Below are positions 1,253 through 9,937 of a DNA stretch of 10,026 nt, piece after piece. The first letter of the stretch is position 1, and each line of letters begins with the position of its first letter. Under the pieces are notes generated by a model. That model searched no databases. It was not told where the DNA came from and was given only the letters and a program-made list of their open reading frames with translations. The stretch lies in the sequence record OP999027.1; one strand, written 5' to 3'. The position numbers were made by a program, and so were the translations under genes.

Positions 1253-2062
1253 CTATGTAGCGAACAGATAATTTTCAGTCTTTGAGGCCGGTGCTGCAAG
1301 CCGCAGAGCCAATTCATCCTTATGCTTTATAGCGAAGATTTTAGACTTTCCGCTGCGTATCTGATCTTGATATGTTTTGCTCAATTCTTCTGCATAACTC
1401 TTTAACACAGCTTCTATATCATTATTATAATCAGCCAGGCTAACTTTCTTTTCCTCAAAAAACCAATTATTGCTTCCTAACATACCAGCAGCAACTAAGT
1501 CCATTTTCGTATCTGCATAAAATACGTCAGCTTCGATAAACGTATCATTACCGTCTATAGGTATAGTGTATCTTTTTAGCTTCTTCATCGCCGTATTTAT
1601 CATATTCATCTTAACCTCCTTATCATGCTCAACATAAGCCAAAGGATCATAGGTAAAGCCAGCTCTTTCGATAAAGTCATTGAAGACATAAATTAGTGGG
1701 GATAAGCCAGACATTATTATTATCAATAGCCTATCTTTAGCCGCATCTAGGTCAAACAAATACTCGCTGTTATGATCGACATTTATTTCAAAAATGAAAG
1801 TGAACATTATTTTTAGTTTTTCTTTGTTGGCAGTGTTATATAGTCTAACACTTAGGTTTATCGCATATGTTGTTTGATTAATCTTTGATATATCTTTCTT
1901 TATGCTAGCTATTTTATAGTTGTACAAGGCGAAAGGCAATAGGCCTTTCTTATATAGCGCGAGACTGTTTCTTAACACGTAGTGTACAAGATCTTCTAAA
2001 GTCTTTTCTTTTACCTTTAAGTGGAGTTGTGTTTTTTCGGGTTCGGATTGGATCTCAAACAT
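1253..2062 (-). CDS. Hypothetical protein (269 aa) with a probable single N-terminal RHH and an unassigned alpha/beta C-terminal region
   Basis: ATG with GGCGGT RBS downstream of a TATA box. QLHLKVKEKTLEDLVHYVLRNSLALYKKGLLPFALYNY aligns with RHH2 of the neighbouring protein (L..YV..N......L..F.AL..Y). Remainder not recognised. Confidence 0.75.
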   Translation of the reverse strand: MFEIQSEPEKTQLHLKVKEKTLEDLVHYVLRNSLALYKKGLLPFALYNYKIASIKKDISKINQTTYAINLSVRLYNTANKEKLKIMFTFIFEINVDHNSEYLFDLDAAKDRLLIIIMSGLSPLIYVFNDFIERAGFTYDPLAYVEHDKEVKMNMINTAMKKLKRYTIPIDGNDTFIEADVFYADTKMDLVAAGMLGSNNWFFEEKKVSLADYNNDIEAVLKSYAEELSKTYQDQIRSGKSKIFAIKHKDELALRLAAPASKTENYLFAT

Positions 2063-2233
2063 TTTACCGCCGATTATTACTGTAGTTATTTAAGCTTATA
2101 AAACTTTCTATCATGAGCTTCATAGCCAAATACGTAAAATTACGTGTTAACATAACAGTATAGTCACAAAAACATAAGGGGAAAAAGGGACTTCACCAAA
2201 ATTGTAGAACTGACATTACAATTCTGTAATTTT
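2060..2233 (-). promoter_or_regulatory. Intergenic cassette copy 1: oligo-T terminator, 36-bp inverted repeat, 14-bp palindrome, BRE/TATA, leader
   Basis: Minus strand GAAAG-TTTTATAAG (2095-2108) is a BRE+TATA. Perfect palindrome ACGTAA-AA-TTACGT 2132-2145; IR AAAATTGTAGAA-N12-TTCTGTAATTTT 2198-2233. About 80% identical by hand to 7197-7340. Confidence 0.8.
2178..2190 (-). terminator. Pyrimidine/oligo-T terminator candidate for the RHH operon ending at 2243
   Basis: Minus strand TCCCTTTTTCCCC about 55 nt after the stop codon; same relative position as the T7 tracts in cassette copies 2 and 3. Confidence 0.5.
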
Positions 2234-4316: not shown

Positions 4317-4637
4317 TTACACTAGCTTGAAATAGGCTGCTAATGCAGTCCGTATGAGGTCGCTCTTATTCGTTCTTATTTTTTCTGCTACAATATCTAG
4401 CTGAGTGTTGAGACTCTCAGGAAGCCTTATGGAAATTACGTACTTACCTGAATAGGGAGAAGTCTTTTTGCTTAACTCCATTATCTCATCATTATTATGC
4501 TGTAAAAGCCTCATCACTGCCTCCTTTATAATTGCGGTTTTTGTGGTGTTAGTTTTTTCAGCCTCTTCCTTTAGCTTTAAAATAAGGCTAGATGCACACT
4601 TGAAGCTTATCTGTTTTAAGGGTTCTTTCTCTAACAT
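4317..4637 (-). CDS. Two-RHH protein (106 aa), CopG/Arc-like single-chain tandem RHH
   Basis: KQISFKCASSLILKLKEEAEKTNTTKTAIIKEAVMRLL and YVISIRLPESLNTQLDIVAEKIRTNKSDLIRTALAAYF are both textbook RHH patterns. ATG 4637 with GGTGGT RBS (track start GTG 4655 lies in the leader). Confidence 0.9.
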   Translation of the reverse strand: MLEKEPLKQISFKCASSLILKLKEEAEKTNTTKTAIIKEAVMRLLQHNNDEIMELSKKTSPYSGKYVISIRLPESLNTQLDIVAEKIRTNKSDLIRTALAAYFKLV

Positions 4638-4790
4638 TTTACCACCAATTAACACTGTAGTTTTTCTAGATTAAAAAACTATCTATCATGAGTTACATAA
4701 AGAAAACCGTAAAATCTTGTGATATTATGAAACGATGATCACGTAAAATGATTGTTAAAAAAAGGAATTTGCCAAAATTGGTGAATTCTG
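4635..4790 (-). promoter_or_regulatory. Intergenic cassette copy 2 (distal inverted repeat truncated by the upstream gene end)
   Basis: TTAAAAAACTATCTATCATGA at 4671-4691 is identical to 7202-7222. CGTAAAAT, GAAACGAT, A7-GG (4757-4765) and CCAAAATTG are collinear with the other copies. Leader 4635-4662 matches 2060-2087 at 24/28. Confidence 0.75.
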
Positions 4791-4791
4791 T

Positions 4792-5364
4792 CTAGTTATT
4801 CATATTATCATTAATTTTCATTATAATATTCGCTATCGTTTTAAAGGCTAATTTGCCATAAGGATAAAGTTCGATTTGAATGTTTTTAGAAGCCTCATAA
4901 ACTATCTTGTAATGGTGTTTAGGCAAAACCGCAACTATTCTTTTATGGATATTGTGGGCATGAGAGAGTGCAATGGAAAGTAGTTTGATGAACTCTTGTT
5001 TTTCTTCTTCAGTCATCAAAGAAGGAGGATAATCATAAGAATTGAAAGGGTAACAGTTCTCTAATTCTCTAGGGACTAACAACATCGGCTCAGAGACAGA
5101 ATACACTTGAACCTTATCCTCAAGTTTATACTTTCGTAGCAAGGAATAAGCTAGTTTGTGTGTGGCTGACTTATTATAAGGCTTAACTGATGTACAAGGT
5201 AATAAAAGCGCTATTTCTTTTTTGGAATACCAGTTGTTGAGAAAGTACTCATGCCATTTTTTTACCACAGGATGTTGGAATGGGTCAAAGCCAGGCTTTT
5301 TTATTATTTTTTCGCCTGAGCCAAGATACTTCTCTAAGGGTTCACAGCCTTCTACATAACTCAT
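4792..5364 (-). CDS. Stand-alone ArcS-like catalytic domain (DUF5591-type; archaeosine synthase C1 region), no PUA domain
   Basis: PCTSVKPYNKSATH (aa 56-69, nt 5158-5199) matches the ArcS signature PCx3KPYx2Sx2H exactly; followed by VSEPMLLVPRELE..YP...YDYP, typical of this domain. Only 190 aa. Confidence 0.85.
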   Translation of the reverse strand: MSYVEGCEPLEKYLGSGEKIIKKPGFDPFQHPVVKKWHEYFLNNWYSKKEIALLLPCTSVKPYNKSATHKLAYSLLRKYKLEDKVQVYSVSEPMLLVPRELENCYPFNSYDYPPSLMTEEEKQEFIKLLSIALSHAHNIHKRIVAVLPKHHYKIVYEASKNIQIELYPYGKLAFKTIANIIMKINDNMNN

Positions 5365-6205
5365 TTATTTCCGCCTCTGGGTCTGTTATATTATGAGAGT
5401 ACTTAATAAGAGGGTGATCTGCCTCATACTCACTATGTAGCAAGACCCATACATTAATAAATGATCTATCTATCCAATTGTCAAACCTTATAGGAAATGG
5501 GTAGTGAGTCTTCTCTAGAAAGTCCTTAAGTGATTCAAGTTCATCTTCACTAATTCTTCTAGCACCCCAACTTATTTTTCTCTCTCCAACATACCTTTCT
5601 CCTTTTCCAGGCAATAACACCATACCATGTATTGCCTTTACTCTATAAGTTGATGTGTCAACACTATCAGCATCATAAAAAACCTTTCTCATGAAAGGAG
5701 AACCAGCACCTAAAACGTGAATTTTACCCTTCCATTCTTTTCTAACAAGGCGATACATCGCAACTGCTAGCTTTTGACTGGCTACCTTATTAAGAGATGG
5801 TGGAACTATCCCACCAAATGCGATATAATCCGTATATTGAGAGTAGAAATCAATAGCCTTTTTAATGCTTTCAACATCATAAGCGTGAATGACTGGTATT
5901 ATATTCTTATCCAGTTTCGTGTATAAGTACTCAAAATGCTTGAAATTAAGCTCTGAAGGCTTTTCGCAAGGTGTTGCAGGTATATCGAGACTAATGTAAT
6001 AGTCTGCATCAAGCCTCTTGTATTTATCTAATACGGCATCTACACTAATCTGCATTTTTTTAACCATTATTTGATAGCCACCAGAATCTACCCACGTTTC
6101 ATTTTCCCATTCTACAAAGTCCCACACAAGCTGATTAATCATCAGTGGTACACCTAACTCCCATAACTTCACCCTACTATCAGGCAAACCTAAAATAATC
6201 TTCAT
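5342..6205 (-). CDS. tRNA-guanine transglycosylase-fold protein, DpdA-like (candidate DNA 7-deazaguanine transglycosylase)
   Basis: TGT motifs DSGGYQ, SLDIP, PVIH, FGG, HVLGAGSP and DSVDTST, with both catalytic Asp positions present. No CxCxxC zinc site and no PUA domain; His where tRNA TGTs have QG. ATG 6205 preferred; the track start GTG 6247 overlaps the upstream gene. Confidence 0.85.
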   Translation of the reverse strand: MKIILGLPDSRVKLWELGVPLMINQLVWDFVEWENETWVDSGGYQIMVKKMQISVDAVLDKYKRLDADYYISLDIPATPCEKPSELNFKHFEYLYTKLDKNIIPVIHAYDVESIKKAIDFYSQYTDYIAFGGIVPPSLNKVASQKLAVAMYRLVRKEWKGKIHVLGAGSPFMRKVFYDADSVDTSTYRVKAIHGMVLLPGKGERYVGERKISWGARRISEDELESLKDFLEKTHYPFPIRFDNWIDRSFINVWVLLHSEYEADHPLIKYSHNITDPEAEINELCRRL

Positions 6206-6224: not shown

Positions 6225-6677
6225 CTATATGTTAAATACCATTTCACGTATGGTTTTGATTGTATTTCTTACAAATCTCGCCTTCTTCATCGTCAGTGGG
6301 GTCTGATTCAGTTTTAGCTGAAGATGCTGAATAAAGTAGAACATCAAGATTCTGTGAGCCTTTTTTGCCCTTTCATTTTCGTATTCCGGAACGACGTAAA
6401 CTACATTCAAGGCGAGTACATCTCTCCAGCTTTCTATGTGAACATACATCTGCAGAACTTCCTGGAGATGAATGAGATATTCCTGAATTTTCGTATTATC
6501 TTCTAATGTTCTCAAGATTTTTGCTAACATGTAGATGATCTCGTCCAATGTTGCATTCTCTGGATTCTCAATACCAAGCTCTTGCAAAAATTGGAGGCCT
6601 TCTTGATCTTGCGCCACTTCTTCCTTTATGCTCTCCCACGATTCGTTACTTAACCCCTCCGGAACGATATTTATCAT
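6225..6677 (-). CDS. Hypothetical all-alpha protein (150 aa), tandem paralog of 6693-7163
   Basis: Roughly half of residues identical to the neighbour by hand alignment (e.g. YVVP.Y..ERAKKAH..LMFY.IQ.LQ). Both are preceded by GG-rich RBS + AAAAAC-ATG-ATA. Confidence 0.85.
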   Translation of the reverse strand: MINIVPEGLSNESWESIKEEVAQDQEGLQFLQELGIENPENATLDEIIYMLAKILRTLEDNTKIQEYLIHLQEVLQMYVHIESWRDVLALNVVYVVPEYENERAKKAHRILMFYFIQHLQLKLNQTPLTMKKARFVRNTIKTIREMVFNI

Positions 6678-6692
6678 GTTTTTCTTACCCCC

Positions 6693-7163
6693 CTATCTAT
6701 TCTGCGTATTAAATATCATTTCACGCAAGCTTTCAATAAATTTATCTATAAACTCCATTTTTTCAGTAAATAATCCAGGTCCTTTTATAGGTTGTTGTAA
6801 GTACTGAATCAAGTAAAACATTAGTAACTTGTGTGCTTTTTTTGCTCTCTCGTCCTTATAGTCAGGTACGACGTAAATCATAGCCAACACATTATCCTCA
6901 TTCTGCCAATCCTCATTGAATTCTGAAACATACGTCTGTAATGATGCTTTCAATTGTATTATATATTTTGTTTTAGCTTCATCACTTTCTAAGGTATTTA
7001 ATAACTTCGCTATCATACGAACTATTTCATATCTTGTTGCCTCTGCAGGGTCCTCAAGACCTAGTTCTCTCAAATATTGTATAGCTTCTTTATCTTGTGC
7101 AACATTTTTCTTTATATATTCCCAGCTTATTTTACTTATTCCTTCTGGCACAATATCTATCAT
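6693..7163 (-). CDS. Hypothetical all-alpha protein (156 aa), first gene of the TGT/ArcS operon
   Basis: ATG with GGAGGTGG RBS directly downstream of cassette copy 3; paralogous to 6225-6677. Confidence 0.87.
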   Translation of the reverse strand: MIDIVPEGISKISWEYIKKNVAQDKEAIQYLRELGLEDPAEATRYEIVRMIAKLLNTLESDEAKTKYIIQLKASLQTYVSEFNEDWQNEDNVLAMIYVVPDYKDERAKKAHKLLMFYLIQYLQQPIKGPGLFTEKMEFIDKFIESLREMIFNTQNR

Positions 7164-7196
7164 GTTTTTCCCACCTCCATTTATCTTTTCTCTTTT

Positions 7197-7340
7197 TTAG
7201 CTTAAAAAACTATCTATCATGAACTCCATAGTCAAAAACGTAAAATTATGTGTTAACACGAAACGATAGTCAAAAAACTTGAGAGGAAAAAAAGGGGCTT
7301 CTCCAAAATTGTAGAACTATCATGACAATTCTACAAATTT
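7197..7340 (-). promoter_or_regulatory. Intergenic cassette copy 3
   Basis: 54/62 identity of 7197-7258 to 2091-2152 and 36/43 of 7298-7340 to 2191-2233. IR AAAATTGTAGAA(7305-7316)-N12-TTCTACAAATTT(7329-7340); near-palindrome ACGTAAAATTATGT 7238-7251; T7 tract (A7 on + at 7287-7293). Confidence 0.82.
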
Positions 7341-7377
7341 GCTACCATCACGAATTTTTCTCGTACTAATGAGATTT

Positions 7378-7392
7378 AAAAAAAGGGAAAAA
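7378..7392 (-). terminator. Oligo-T terminator candidate for the thyX operon
   Basis: Minus strand TTTTTCCCTTTTTTT about 70 nt after the thyX stop. Confidence 0.5.
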
Positions 7393-7401
7393 TTTAGCGA
7401 T

Positions 7402-7441
7402 AAAAGTTCGAAGTTCCTGTATATAGCAAAAGTTCGAAGTT
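7402..7441. repeat. Perfect 14-bp direct repeat AAAAGTTCGAAGTT (period 26)
   Basis: Copies at 7402-7415 and 7428-7441, separated by CCTGTATATAGC. Confidence 0.85.
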
Positions 7442-7462
7442 TGAAAATAAGCTTTCATCACT

Positions 7463-8249: not shown

Positions 8250-9260
8250 TCAAAACGTTATGTAAAACTCTGCGATTAAGTGTAAGGCCTCTTTAGCGTT
8301 CTTTAGGGCCTCATCAAGATGCTTTTGGAAATCGTCAAAACATAGCGTATACGTATCATTACATAGTACGTCGTAAAGTGCTTGTAATGCCTTAAAATCT
8401 GCATATGTCTCCATTAAGTTTATTATAGTTGCGTCAAAATCAACGTCTTCTGCATCTATTCTTTGCTCCTCCTCGTTCCAGGCTTTTTTTGATAACACTA
8501 ATCCAGCCGGATTAGCAGGAGTGATTGCTAGATTATAATACTCCCACATATTGTCAATAGCTTCGCTTAGCACATTATAAGTTCCCCTAGTAATATCCTC
8601 ATTCGCCTCAAGCATCGCGGTAATCGTATCTATGTCCCTCTCAAGATGCTCATGTCTATTTTCTATCATGCCATAATACCTCGAAAGATACTTGTCTAAC
8701 TCTTCCACCAAGGCTTGCCTTTTATCTGGGCCAATATTGTTGTGCCTTGTGTAGTAATCTGAAATTGCAACAAGTATACCAAATGCTCTCAGCCTAAACA
8801 CATCTAAATCTCCTTTTAGAAAGAATGACTCTATATCTCTGTTTTGTTTTATAAGCAGATATAATGCCTCCATTGCCCTTAAATTTGCGTAAATTTCTAA
8901 AACATACATAAATGCATTTTTGGCATCGAATTTCTCTGCTACCATTATGCCTCTCTCCTTATCAAAAGCCTTATTAAAAACCGCACTTAGCATTGCGGCA
9001 TACTCCCTCACCTCATCATAGTAGACACCTTCTAAAATGCTAAACGTTAACTCTATTGCGCTTTGCGCGCTTTTCGAAGTAAACTTTTTTTTCTCAATCT
9101 CTTTCCAAACATATTTAAGACTTAATTCTATGTTAAAAACTGTCTCTTGTGTTTCCCCATAATAAACCTTAAACTCCATTAGATCTTTAATACTCTGTTG
9201 TATTTTTGAAATAAGTTCTACCTTATCATTTGCCCCTCTAGGGTTTATAAGTTCGGCCAT
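8250..9260 (-). CDS. Hypothetical alpha-helical protein (~336 aa) made of two diverged ~162-aa repeats
   Basis: Long ORF; ATG 9260 follows GGTGA RBS (track start GTG 9275). YYG, KA, E.YA and ALY recur at an offset of 162 aa. Confidence 0.85.
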
Positions 9261-9380
9261 TTTTGTATTCACCAATTTAACTATTGTTCTTTATACTTAT
9301 AAATCTATTTCCTATGTTTTACGGTAATAACCCATAAAAACTATGGCATTTATTAGCATAGCCACTACCTAAAAAAAAGG
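9258..9380 (-). promoter_or_regulatory. Promoter of the 336-aa/thyX operon; possible degenerate fourth cassette copy
   Basis: TTTATAAG TATA (9296-9303), palindrome CCATA-N5-TATGG at 9331-9345, A8-GG at 9371-9380. Primary identity to the other copies is weak. Confidence 0.55.
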
Positions 9381-9509
9381 AACGTATTATGACTATAGAG
9401 TAGGATTTTTCTAAAAATATGTAGAAAAAGAAGCTAGCTTAAAGTAAAAGGTAAAAATGCTAGGATAGAATGCAGACTCACTTATTATTATCATTTGATC
9501 AAAAAGAAT

Positions 9510-9608
9510 TTAAAAAAAAGACTCATCAACGTCATTTTTCAATTCATTACGTAGTTCATCAGTGGAAAATGTTAGAATCGAAAATAATAGTATTTTTTTG
9601 TAATTCAT
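9510..9608 (-). CDS. Possible 32-aa peptide MNYKKILLFSILTFSTDELRNELKNDVDESFF overlapping the end of the previous ORF
   Basis: ATG 9608 with GGCGA upstream; TAA at 9510-9512 directly after a T8 tract. Short, so it could be chance. Confidence 0.25.
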   Translation of the reverse strand: MNYKKILLFSILTFSTDELRNELKNDVDESFF

Positions 9609-9937
9609 ACTTCGCCTTATGCAAATGGCTTGAGGCCCTCCCAATAATCTCTTTTTCACTTTTTCCCTTAGAGGGATTATAAACGAATACTAATACTAGC
9701 ACGTCAGGCGGATTTTTGCCTGGGTAAACGTGAACATAAACATTAACATCAGGCATTTCCTCAATATCACAAATATAAAGTGCCCAATTTGTCTTTTTGT
9801 ATAAAAAGCCGTCACACTTCGATGTTTTGTAACGTGTTACTTCGCTAAGTCTATTTTCTGCCCAAGTAAATAATTCAATGAGTTCTTTTTTTAATTGTTC
9901 CGAAATTACGCTCTGCGCAGAAATTATTTATCCCCAT
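9559..9937 (-). pseudogene. Probable ~125-aa gene with a single frameshift near its 5' end (or a non-AUG start); the track shows only its last 65 aa
   Basis: The frame of 9559-9756 stays open to 9927 (IISAQSVISEQLKKELIELFTWAENRLSEVTRYKTSKCDGFLYKKTNWALYICDIEE-MPDV...) with no ATG/GTG/TTG before 9756. An ATG at 9937 sits one base out of frame, downstream of a TTTAAAAA box (9956-9963). Confidence 0.55.

Follow-up and report, generated by a model that had tools for sequence, protein, structure and literature searches.

The question raised by this locus is whether two adjoining genes, which stand at the head of the genes for 7-deazaguanine DNA modification in Sulfolobus tengchongensis spindle-shaped virus 4 (STSV4) and are both listed in GenBank as hypothetical proteins, belong to the modification machinery or serve the virus in another way. 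Two questions were left by Cui et al. (2023, PMC10516641), namely by what route viruses of the STSV type acquire 7-deazaguanine and insert it into their DNA, and what other proteins take part. In this study, the window, meaning the whole stretch of DNA analysed (10,026 bp), matches the STSV4 contig OP999027.1 exactly; STSV4 is a tailed spindle virus with an incomplete genome and an identity of 80-86% to STSV1. The genes on the minus strand follow the order of a helical 341-aa protein, thyX (PF02511, E 5e-67), an intergenic region of 299 nt, ORF12, ORF11, dpdA, arcS2 and several multi-RHH proteins. The dpdA-like gene (5342..6205, minus strand; phrog_887, E 2e-53) encodes a 7-deazaguanine DNA transglycosylase of the TGT family, whose product is 93% identical to both STSV1 ORF18 and STSV2_15, and it is overlapped by 23 nt by arcS2 (4792..5364, minus strand; PF17884, E 3.4e-20), which encodes a stand-alone DUF5591 / ArcS C1 domain. 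The start of dpdA is ambiguous, being either the GenBank ATG at 6205 or a GTG at 6247 that overlaps ORF11 by 23 nt, and the alignments of dpdA homologs start at the ATG.

ORF12 (STSV4_1_ORF12, P0001; 6693-7163, minus strand; 156 aa) is the upstream and variable paralog, and ORF11 (STSV4_1_ORF11, P0002; 6225-6677, minus strand; 150 aa) is the downstream and conserved one. The preliminary description, which was made from the sequence, had seen here a tandem duplication of about 50% identity that takes in the ribosome-binding site and start context, lies between a cassette promoter and the TGT gene, leaves gaps of 15-20 nt and encodes helical proteins, and all of these points were borne out. BLASTP aligned the two proteins with 77/154 identities (E 9e-51), and the block YVVP.Y..ERAKKAH..LMFY.IQ.LQ, given as the most conserved one, was found in both. 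The ORF12 stop is separated from the ORF11 ATG by 15 nt (6678..6692, minus strand), a spacer that holds a G-rich Shine-Dalgarno-like motif and the common GAAAAAC, and the ORF11 stop is separated from the dpdA ATG at 6205 by 19 nt. Both starts display GAAAAAC-ATG-ATA-(G/A)AT-AT behind a G-rich Shine-Dalgarno-like motif, which reads GGAGGTGGG before ORF12 and GGGGGGT before ORF11, and a copy of the cassette (7159-7340) lies upstream of the pair. The synonymous sites between ORF12 and ORF11 are saturated, with a dN of 0.38, indicating that the duplication is old. AlphaFold2 gave confident all-helical models with seven helices for both paralogs (pLDDT 84 and pTM 0.83 for ORF12; pLDDT 89 and pTM 0.86 for ORF11). 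Both proteins are acidic (pI 5.1 for ORF12 and 5.3 for ORF11), and the family proteins have a net charge of -5 to -6 and zero cysteines, features that speak for the binding of proteins and against catalysis or the binding of DNA.

Three copies of the cassette were found in the window (2053-2233, 4628-4785 and 7159-7340), which are 120-180 nt long and 67-82% alike, and each of them harbors a palindrome, a T7 run and the TATA-like GATAGTTTTTTAA. The cassette ahead of ORF12 (7164..7340, minus strand) displays a palindromic operator-like element at about 7336-7309, a T7 run at 7293-7287, a TATA-like GATAGTTTTTTAAGC at about 7215-7200 and the Shine-Dalgarno motif GGAGGTGGG at 7178-7170, and would act as a promoter judging from these motifs. 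The cassette after arcS2 (4628..4785, minus strand), with its T7 run at 4763-4757 and a TATA-like motif at about 4676, heads the RHH genes. On the sense strand, between the first of these two cassettes (7164-7340) and the T7 run at 4763 past arcS2, there is only one T6 run, located within dpdA, which makes it reasonable to infer that ORF12, ORF11, dpdA and arcS2 most likely form one four-gene operon, with dpdA as its third and arcS2 as its fourth gene, read from the cassette promoter; the putative unit is bounded on both sides by cassettes with T7 runs. With regard to the further remark that no intervening TATA element or terminator could be seen, there is no T run of six or more between 7209 and 5682, and TATA-like hexamers do occur within the ORFs (7116, 6789 and 6752); such hexamers are expected inside ORFs at 35% GC, and internal promoters may still exist. 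An STSV4-like MAG contig (L008) departs from the STSV4 sequence directly after arcS2, exactly at the cassette, which suggests that the cassettes are recombination joints for exchanging gene modules.

With regard to distribution, the statement that the family is not a recognised one holds, because neither protein has a meaningful match in Pfam, PHROG, NCBIfam or PADLOC. A profile built from ORF12, ORF11 and STSV1 ORF17 disclosed four proteins among 1.84 billion representatives, namely the ORF11/ORF17 type, ORF12, a 69-aa fragment and a 188-aa relative (P0013) of about 30% identity, and a tblastn search of 50,697 records from phages and archaeal viruses found matches in STSV4 and STSV1 only. All known members lie in STSV-like viral DNA in the order thyX, member or members, dpdA, arcS2. 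The family is thus a small orphan group confined to STSV-like Sulfolobus spindle viruses, with members that are acidic, all-helical and about 150 aa long. STSV1 ORF17 (YP_077210.1; UniProt Q684F7), which equals ORF11 in length and likewise lies between thyX and the TGT gene, has been listed as a hypothetical protein from 2005 onwards, and the literature searched assigns it no function.

The copy number of the family varies among these viruses. One copy, ORF17, is present between thyX and dpdA in STSV1, and STSV4 additionally has the 50%-identical ORF12 upstream, as do the MAG contig L008 and a Logan contig (L010), on which the ORF12 protein is identical. On the MAG contig L005, the 188-aa P0013 takes the position of ORF12 and is separated by a second promoter-like spacer from the 150-aa copy that follows it, so that the upstream slot is occupied by either ORF12 or P0013. 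The downstream gene is conserved, its ORF11 orthologs being 92% (STSV1 ORF17) and 88% (the 150-aa gene of L005) identical in amino acids. A search of the complete STSV2 genome at E<=1 found no family member, and compared with STSV4 this genome lacks the whole stretch that begins 125 nt ahead of ORF12 and ends at the dpdA ATG. These viruses therefore offer a natural copy-number series of none (STSV2), one (STSV1) and two (STSV4). Moreover, an ORF17-type gene is broken after about codon 62 on two short metagenome contigs by the end of a TnpB element on the opposite strand, which encodes a Cas12f1-like TNB domain (E 2e-21). The regions concerned are L006 332-541 and L007 215-424, the element is of the TnpB/IS200-605 type and shares about 89% identity with an element end found at 3-232 of the window, and the cut gene amounts to a natural knock-out present in two assemblies. 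The island DNA gave only chance-level short matches against 301 Sulfolobales genomes, with no integrated copy and no convincing spacer among them. Summed contig depths from two hot-spring metagenomes are lower by 1-2 orders of magnitude for ORF11 than for dpdA/arcS2, and ORF12 lies below ORF11 by a similar step; as such depths mix organisms, this is no more than consistent with the distribution described here.

The preliminary description had proposed that ORF11 and ORF12 are unrecognised components of the modification system, and in its strong form this proposal is contradicted. The DNA of STSV2 carries dCDG at 0.04% of G (PMC10516641), and since this virus has no family member, modification can proceed independently of the family. 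Chromosomal genes for DpdA were found in S. tengchongensis (73% identity), in a Saccharolobus MAG (85%, with 94% for ArcS2) and in Candidatus Aramenus, and each of these three dpdA-arcS2 pairs directly adjoins a divergently oriented gene and lacks a leader ORF. At 46 further genomic dpdA loci, hmmsearch --max detected no family member, and the Sulfolobales dpdA loci among those surveyed show no same-strand ORF upstream. ORF11 and ORF12 are therefore not obligatory subunits of the 7-deazaguanine modification enzymes, and as both STSV2 and the host-chromosomal modules lack them, the two genes at the operon head are ruled out as the missing universal component. The link to dpdA/arcS, on which the proposal had leaned, holds in one direction, as no member was seen away from these genes, but fails in the other, as dpdA/arcS2 stand mostly without members, with 175 clusters of DpdA homologs and 51 genome loci against four clusters of the ORF11/ORF12 family; co-occurrence with dpdA was not found across independent lineages. 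Previous work observed that the genes around dpdA/arcS are not common to other 7-deazaguanine viruses, and that a viral DpdA works alone in heterologous tests, as the DpdA2 of nt-1 inserts preQ0 by itself (PMC10516641). The proposal had been prompted by bacteria, in which DpdB and DpdC, the partners of DpdA, are encoded beside it just as ORF11 and ORF12 lie beside the viral dpdA, but ORF11 and ORF12 resemble no Pfam, NCBIfam or PADLOC family, those of Dpd systems included.

The chromosomal genes are worth describing in their own right. On the S. tengchongensis chromosome CP146016.1 (L014 6001-12885), the gene for the 73%-identical DpdA and one for an ArcS2 of about 65% identity are followed by genes for a DUF87/HerA-like ATPase and a 1011-aa protein, and the region may be a Dpd-like defence island. 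This host pair should be set beside the statement of Cui et al. that proteins for Q/G+ biosynthesis are not encoded by the host (PMC10516641). In the actinomycetes Streptomyces gamaensis and Planomonospora alba (L042 and L043), DpdA-like genes of about 40% identity to the viral one each have a same-strand ORF of 399 aa ahead of them.

The best explanation that we can offer, to which we would give a probability of roughly 40%, is that ORF11 and ORF12 are virus-specific factors for host interaction or anti-defence, co-expressed with anti-restriction enzymes. Under this explanation, both genes would be transcribed together with dpdA and arcS2 on one mRNA from the cassette promoter, and their products would probably act through binding another protein, with ORF11 as the presumable conserved working copy and the upstream slot, holding ORF12 or P0013, as a putatively diverged and exchangeable second copy. 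An anti-defence role, which the preliminary description had offered as its second reading, is compatible with the turnover in copy number within a variable island between thyX and dpdA, with the narrow distribution, with small proteins that are acidic and helical, with the putative operon shared with an anti-restriction enzyme and with a weak Cas10d/Cas11-like structural match. Two observations count against it. STSV1 ORF17 is absent from the STSV1 anti-defence genes predicted by regulatory motifs (PMC11065993). The other is the strong purifying selection on ORF11. Anti-defence genes often evolve fast. Between the STSV4/L008 type and the STSV1/L005 type, ORF11 orthologs show a dS of 1.0-1.2 with a dN/dS of 0.03-0.06, which marks ORF11 as a real and strongly constrained gene with a history unlike that of dpdA, for which the same genomes gave a dS of 0.19-0.28 and a dN/dS of 0.07-0.16; the dS of thyX is 0.05-0.10. 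ORF11 thus sits in an island of deep divergence whose flanks were recently exchanged or homogenised, and this fits the near-identity of viral and host-chromosomal dpdA/arcS2. Recombination that reshuffled old alleles could possibly account for its synonymous divergence, as could selection that favours change in the nucleotide sequence. The regions compared were 6225-6677 of the window, L004 8001-8450 and L005 8224-8673, which are near saturation in dS, yet encode proteins that are 88-92% identical.

That every member adjoins dpdA fits a dpdA-linked role equally well, and the closest alternative to an anti-defence role, which we consider rather doubtful, is a virus-specific adaptor or enhancer of DpdA/ArcS2 that would bind the transglycosylase, the ArcS2 domain or the viral DNA and raise or redirect the modification without being strictly required. 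At each of the five loci, dpdA is immediately preceded by the family, with a spacing of 15-19 nt and common Shine-Dalgarno contexts, but as all of them belong to one clade of close relatives with conserved gene order, the five adjacencies amount to one observation and are not independent evidence. The host-chromosomal modules have no family member, so that the members could adapt a host module to the virus; against this, no such partner exists at other 7-deazaguanine loci, where the DpdA clusters exceed 170. STSV2 is again instructive on both sides, since its DNA is modified even without the family, but at a level low enough to leave room for an enhancing role, and Cui et al. expect more proteins (PMC10516641). 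Likewise, ORF11 is under purifying selection so strong as to suggest that its partner is conserved, but its synonymous divergence is far deeper than that of dpdA, indicating that the two have not recently travelled together. A predicted complex of DpdA, ArcS2 and ORF11, with ORF11 as the scored partner, received a score of 0.00 from a method that gives no verdict and counts neither way.

Unlikely, too, is a different viral role, either as an accessory factor of transcription or replication under multi-RHH control through the common cassette, or as a minor component of the virion or of its assembly. The genes for the RHH regulators are headed by the same cassette, TetR-like regulators appear among the weak, non-significant fold matches, and STSV2 dispenses with the family, all of which would agree with such a role; against it stand the acidic net charge, the lack of a helix-turn-helix or other DNA-binding signature, and the fact that neither structure nor sequence matched regulators beyond the level of noise.

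Returning to the anti-defence reading, a pointer to a possible target came from the predicted fold. The BFVD model of STSV1 ORF17 (Q684F7) superposes on the ORF12 model with a TM of 0.85-0.89 and was the sole BFVD match. Exhaustive structural alignment of both models against 48,161 PDB representatives ranked residues 723-844 of 6THH chain C, which form the C-terminal domain of Cas10d from Sulfolobus islandicus, as the top solved match for each, with Z 7.8, 112 aligned residues and an rmsd of 3.7 Å for ORF12, and Z 8.2, 108 residues and 3.2 Å for ORF11. The match spans residues 42-150 of both paralogs and the whole Cas10d domain at an identity of 9-12%. The D4 domains at the C-termini of Cmr2 and Csm1 ranked next (Z 5.6-7.0), ahead of a type VII effector, Cas11d, a small subunit of Csm and the insert of Cas7-11 that resembles Cas11 (Z 4.2-5.7), and a second structural-alignment run added Csm2 and Cmr5. 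Unrelated bundles such as bestrophin, FliS and designed proteins appeared in the same lists at Z 5-6.5, and the tool itself warns that for helical proteins a Z below about 13 can reflect a common arrangement. Compared with the Cas10d C-terminal domain, Cas11 and Cas10 D4, the two viral proteins are acidic, lack a basic nucleic-acid-binding face and have 41 extra N-terminal residues.

Other searches did not reproduce this resemblance. Foldseek against the PDB returned nothing at E<=0.001, with all E-values above 0.8, the shape searches of the ESM Atlas reached a TM of at most 0.42, and the Atlas feature search gave no usable match. Profiles of the Cas11 families (Csm2, Cmr5, Csa5 and Cse2) in Pfam, NCBIfam and PADLOC did not match either protein at E<=0.1-10. 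We also collected ten Cas10d C-terminal domains from 251 Sulfolobales genomes, starting from a Sulfolobales Cas10d that was found via its HD region and confirmed against 6THH (E 6e-230); TIGR03174 (Csc3) did not recognise Cas10d of Sulfolobales. HHalign of the family against these ten domains gave a probability of 0.1% (E 0.52), which is no evidence of homology to Cas10d. Because a Z of about 8 lies where helical bundles match commonly, the modelled Cas11-like fold of ORF11 and ORF12 is kept as a weak, structure-only lead. Two other candidates were rejected as noise: the Ku70 and TPR matches of a PDB profile search (E>=0.014), in whose list no Cas protein occurred, and a PADLOC match of ORF12 to CARF4-CARF_PDDEXK (16 bits, E 0.0011), which ORF11 and P0013 fail to reproduce.

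Should the lead be followed, the two proteins might be CRISPR small-subunit decoys, whose C-terminal residues, about 110 in number, would imitate the C-terminal domain of Cas10d or Cas11d (type I-D), or Cas10 D4 or Cas11 (type III), and which could poison complex assembly or nuclease recruitment by taking the place of the small subunit or binding its partner. [quoted passage not shown] The genome of the host species (CP146016.1) encodes an intact Cas10d of 845 aa, as do only 11/251 of the sampled Sulfolobales genomes; the window contains no cas genes, and ORF11 and ORF12, lying between thyX and dpdA, are outside any cas operon. Even with the same Cas10d domain ranking first for two independent models ahead of other Cas10/Cas11 bundles, and with both proteins being acidic, we regard a decoy as improbable, given Z values that common helical bundles approach, the unsupportive Foldseek, HHalign and profile searches, and an N-terminal part of 41 residues that it leaves unexplained. 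If the fold proved true, it would represent a new class of archaeal anti-CRISPR acting through subunit mimicry, an archaeal counterpart of the AcrIF3 strategy directed against the type I-D/III effector of S. tengchongensis and carried on the same transcript as DNA-modifying enzymes; if false, ORF11 and ORF12 stay a tightly conserved orphan family. This study adds the series of none, one and two copies, the independence of the modification from the family, the pattern of selection and the fold lead.

Further small helical genes were observed on the STSV4-like MAG contig L008. About 4 kb downstream of arcS2, there is a tandem pair of genes for 119-aa helical proteins (6684-7040 and 7100-7456), the first of which weakly resembles family residues 38-101 (E 0.001 when a small set was searched with hmmsearch; 36% probability in hhalign, with 38% identity over 61 columns) and may be a short relative without the N-terminal part. 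At 8808-9757 of the same contig, two adjoining helical ORFs of about 156-160 aa from an unrelated family are followed by a 177-aa relative, and small helical genes seem to be often tandem-duplicated in these viruses.
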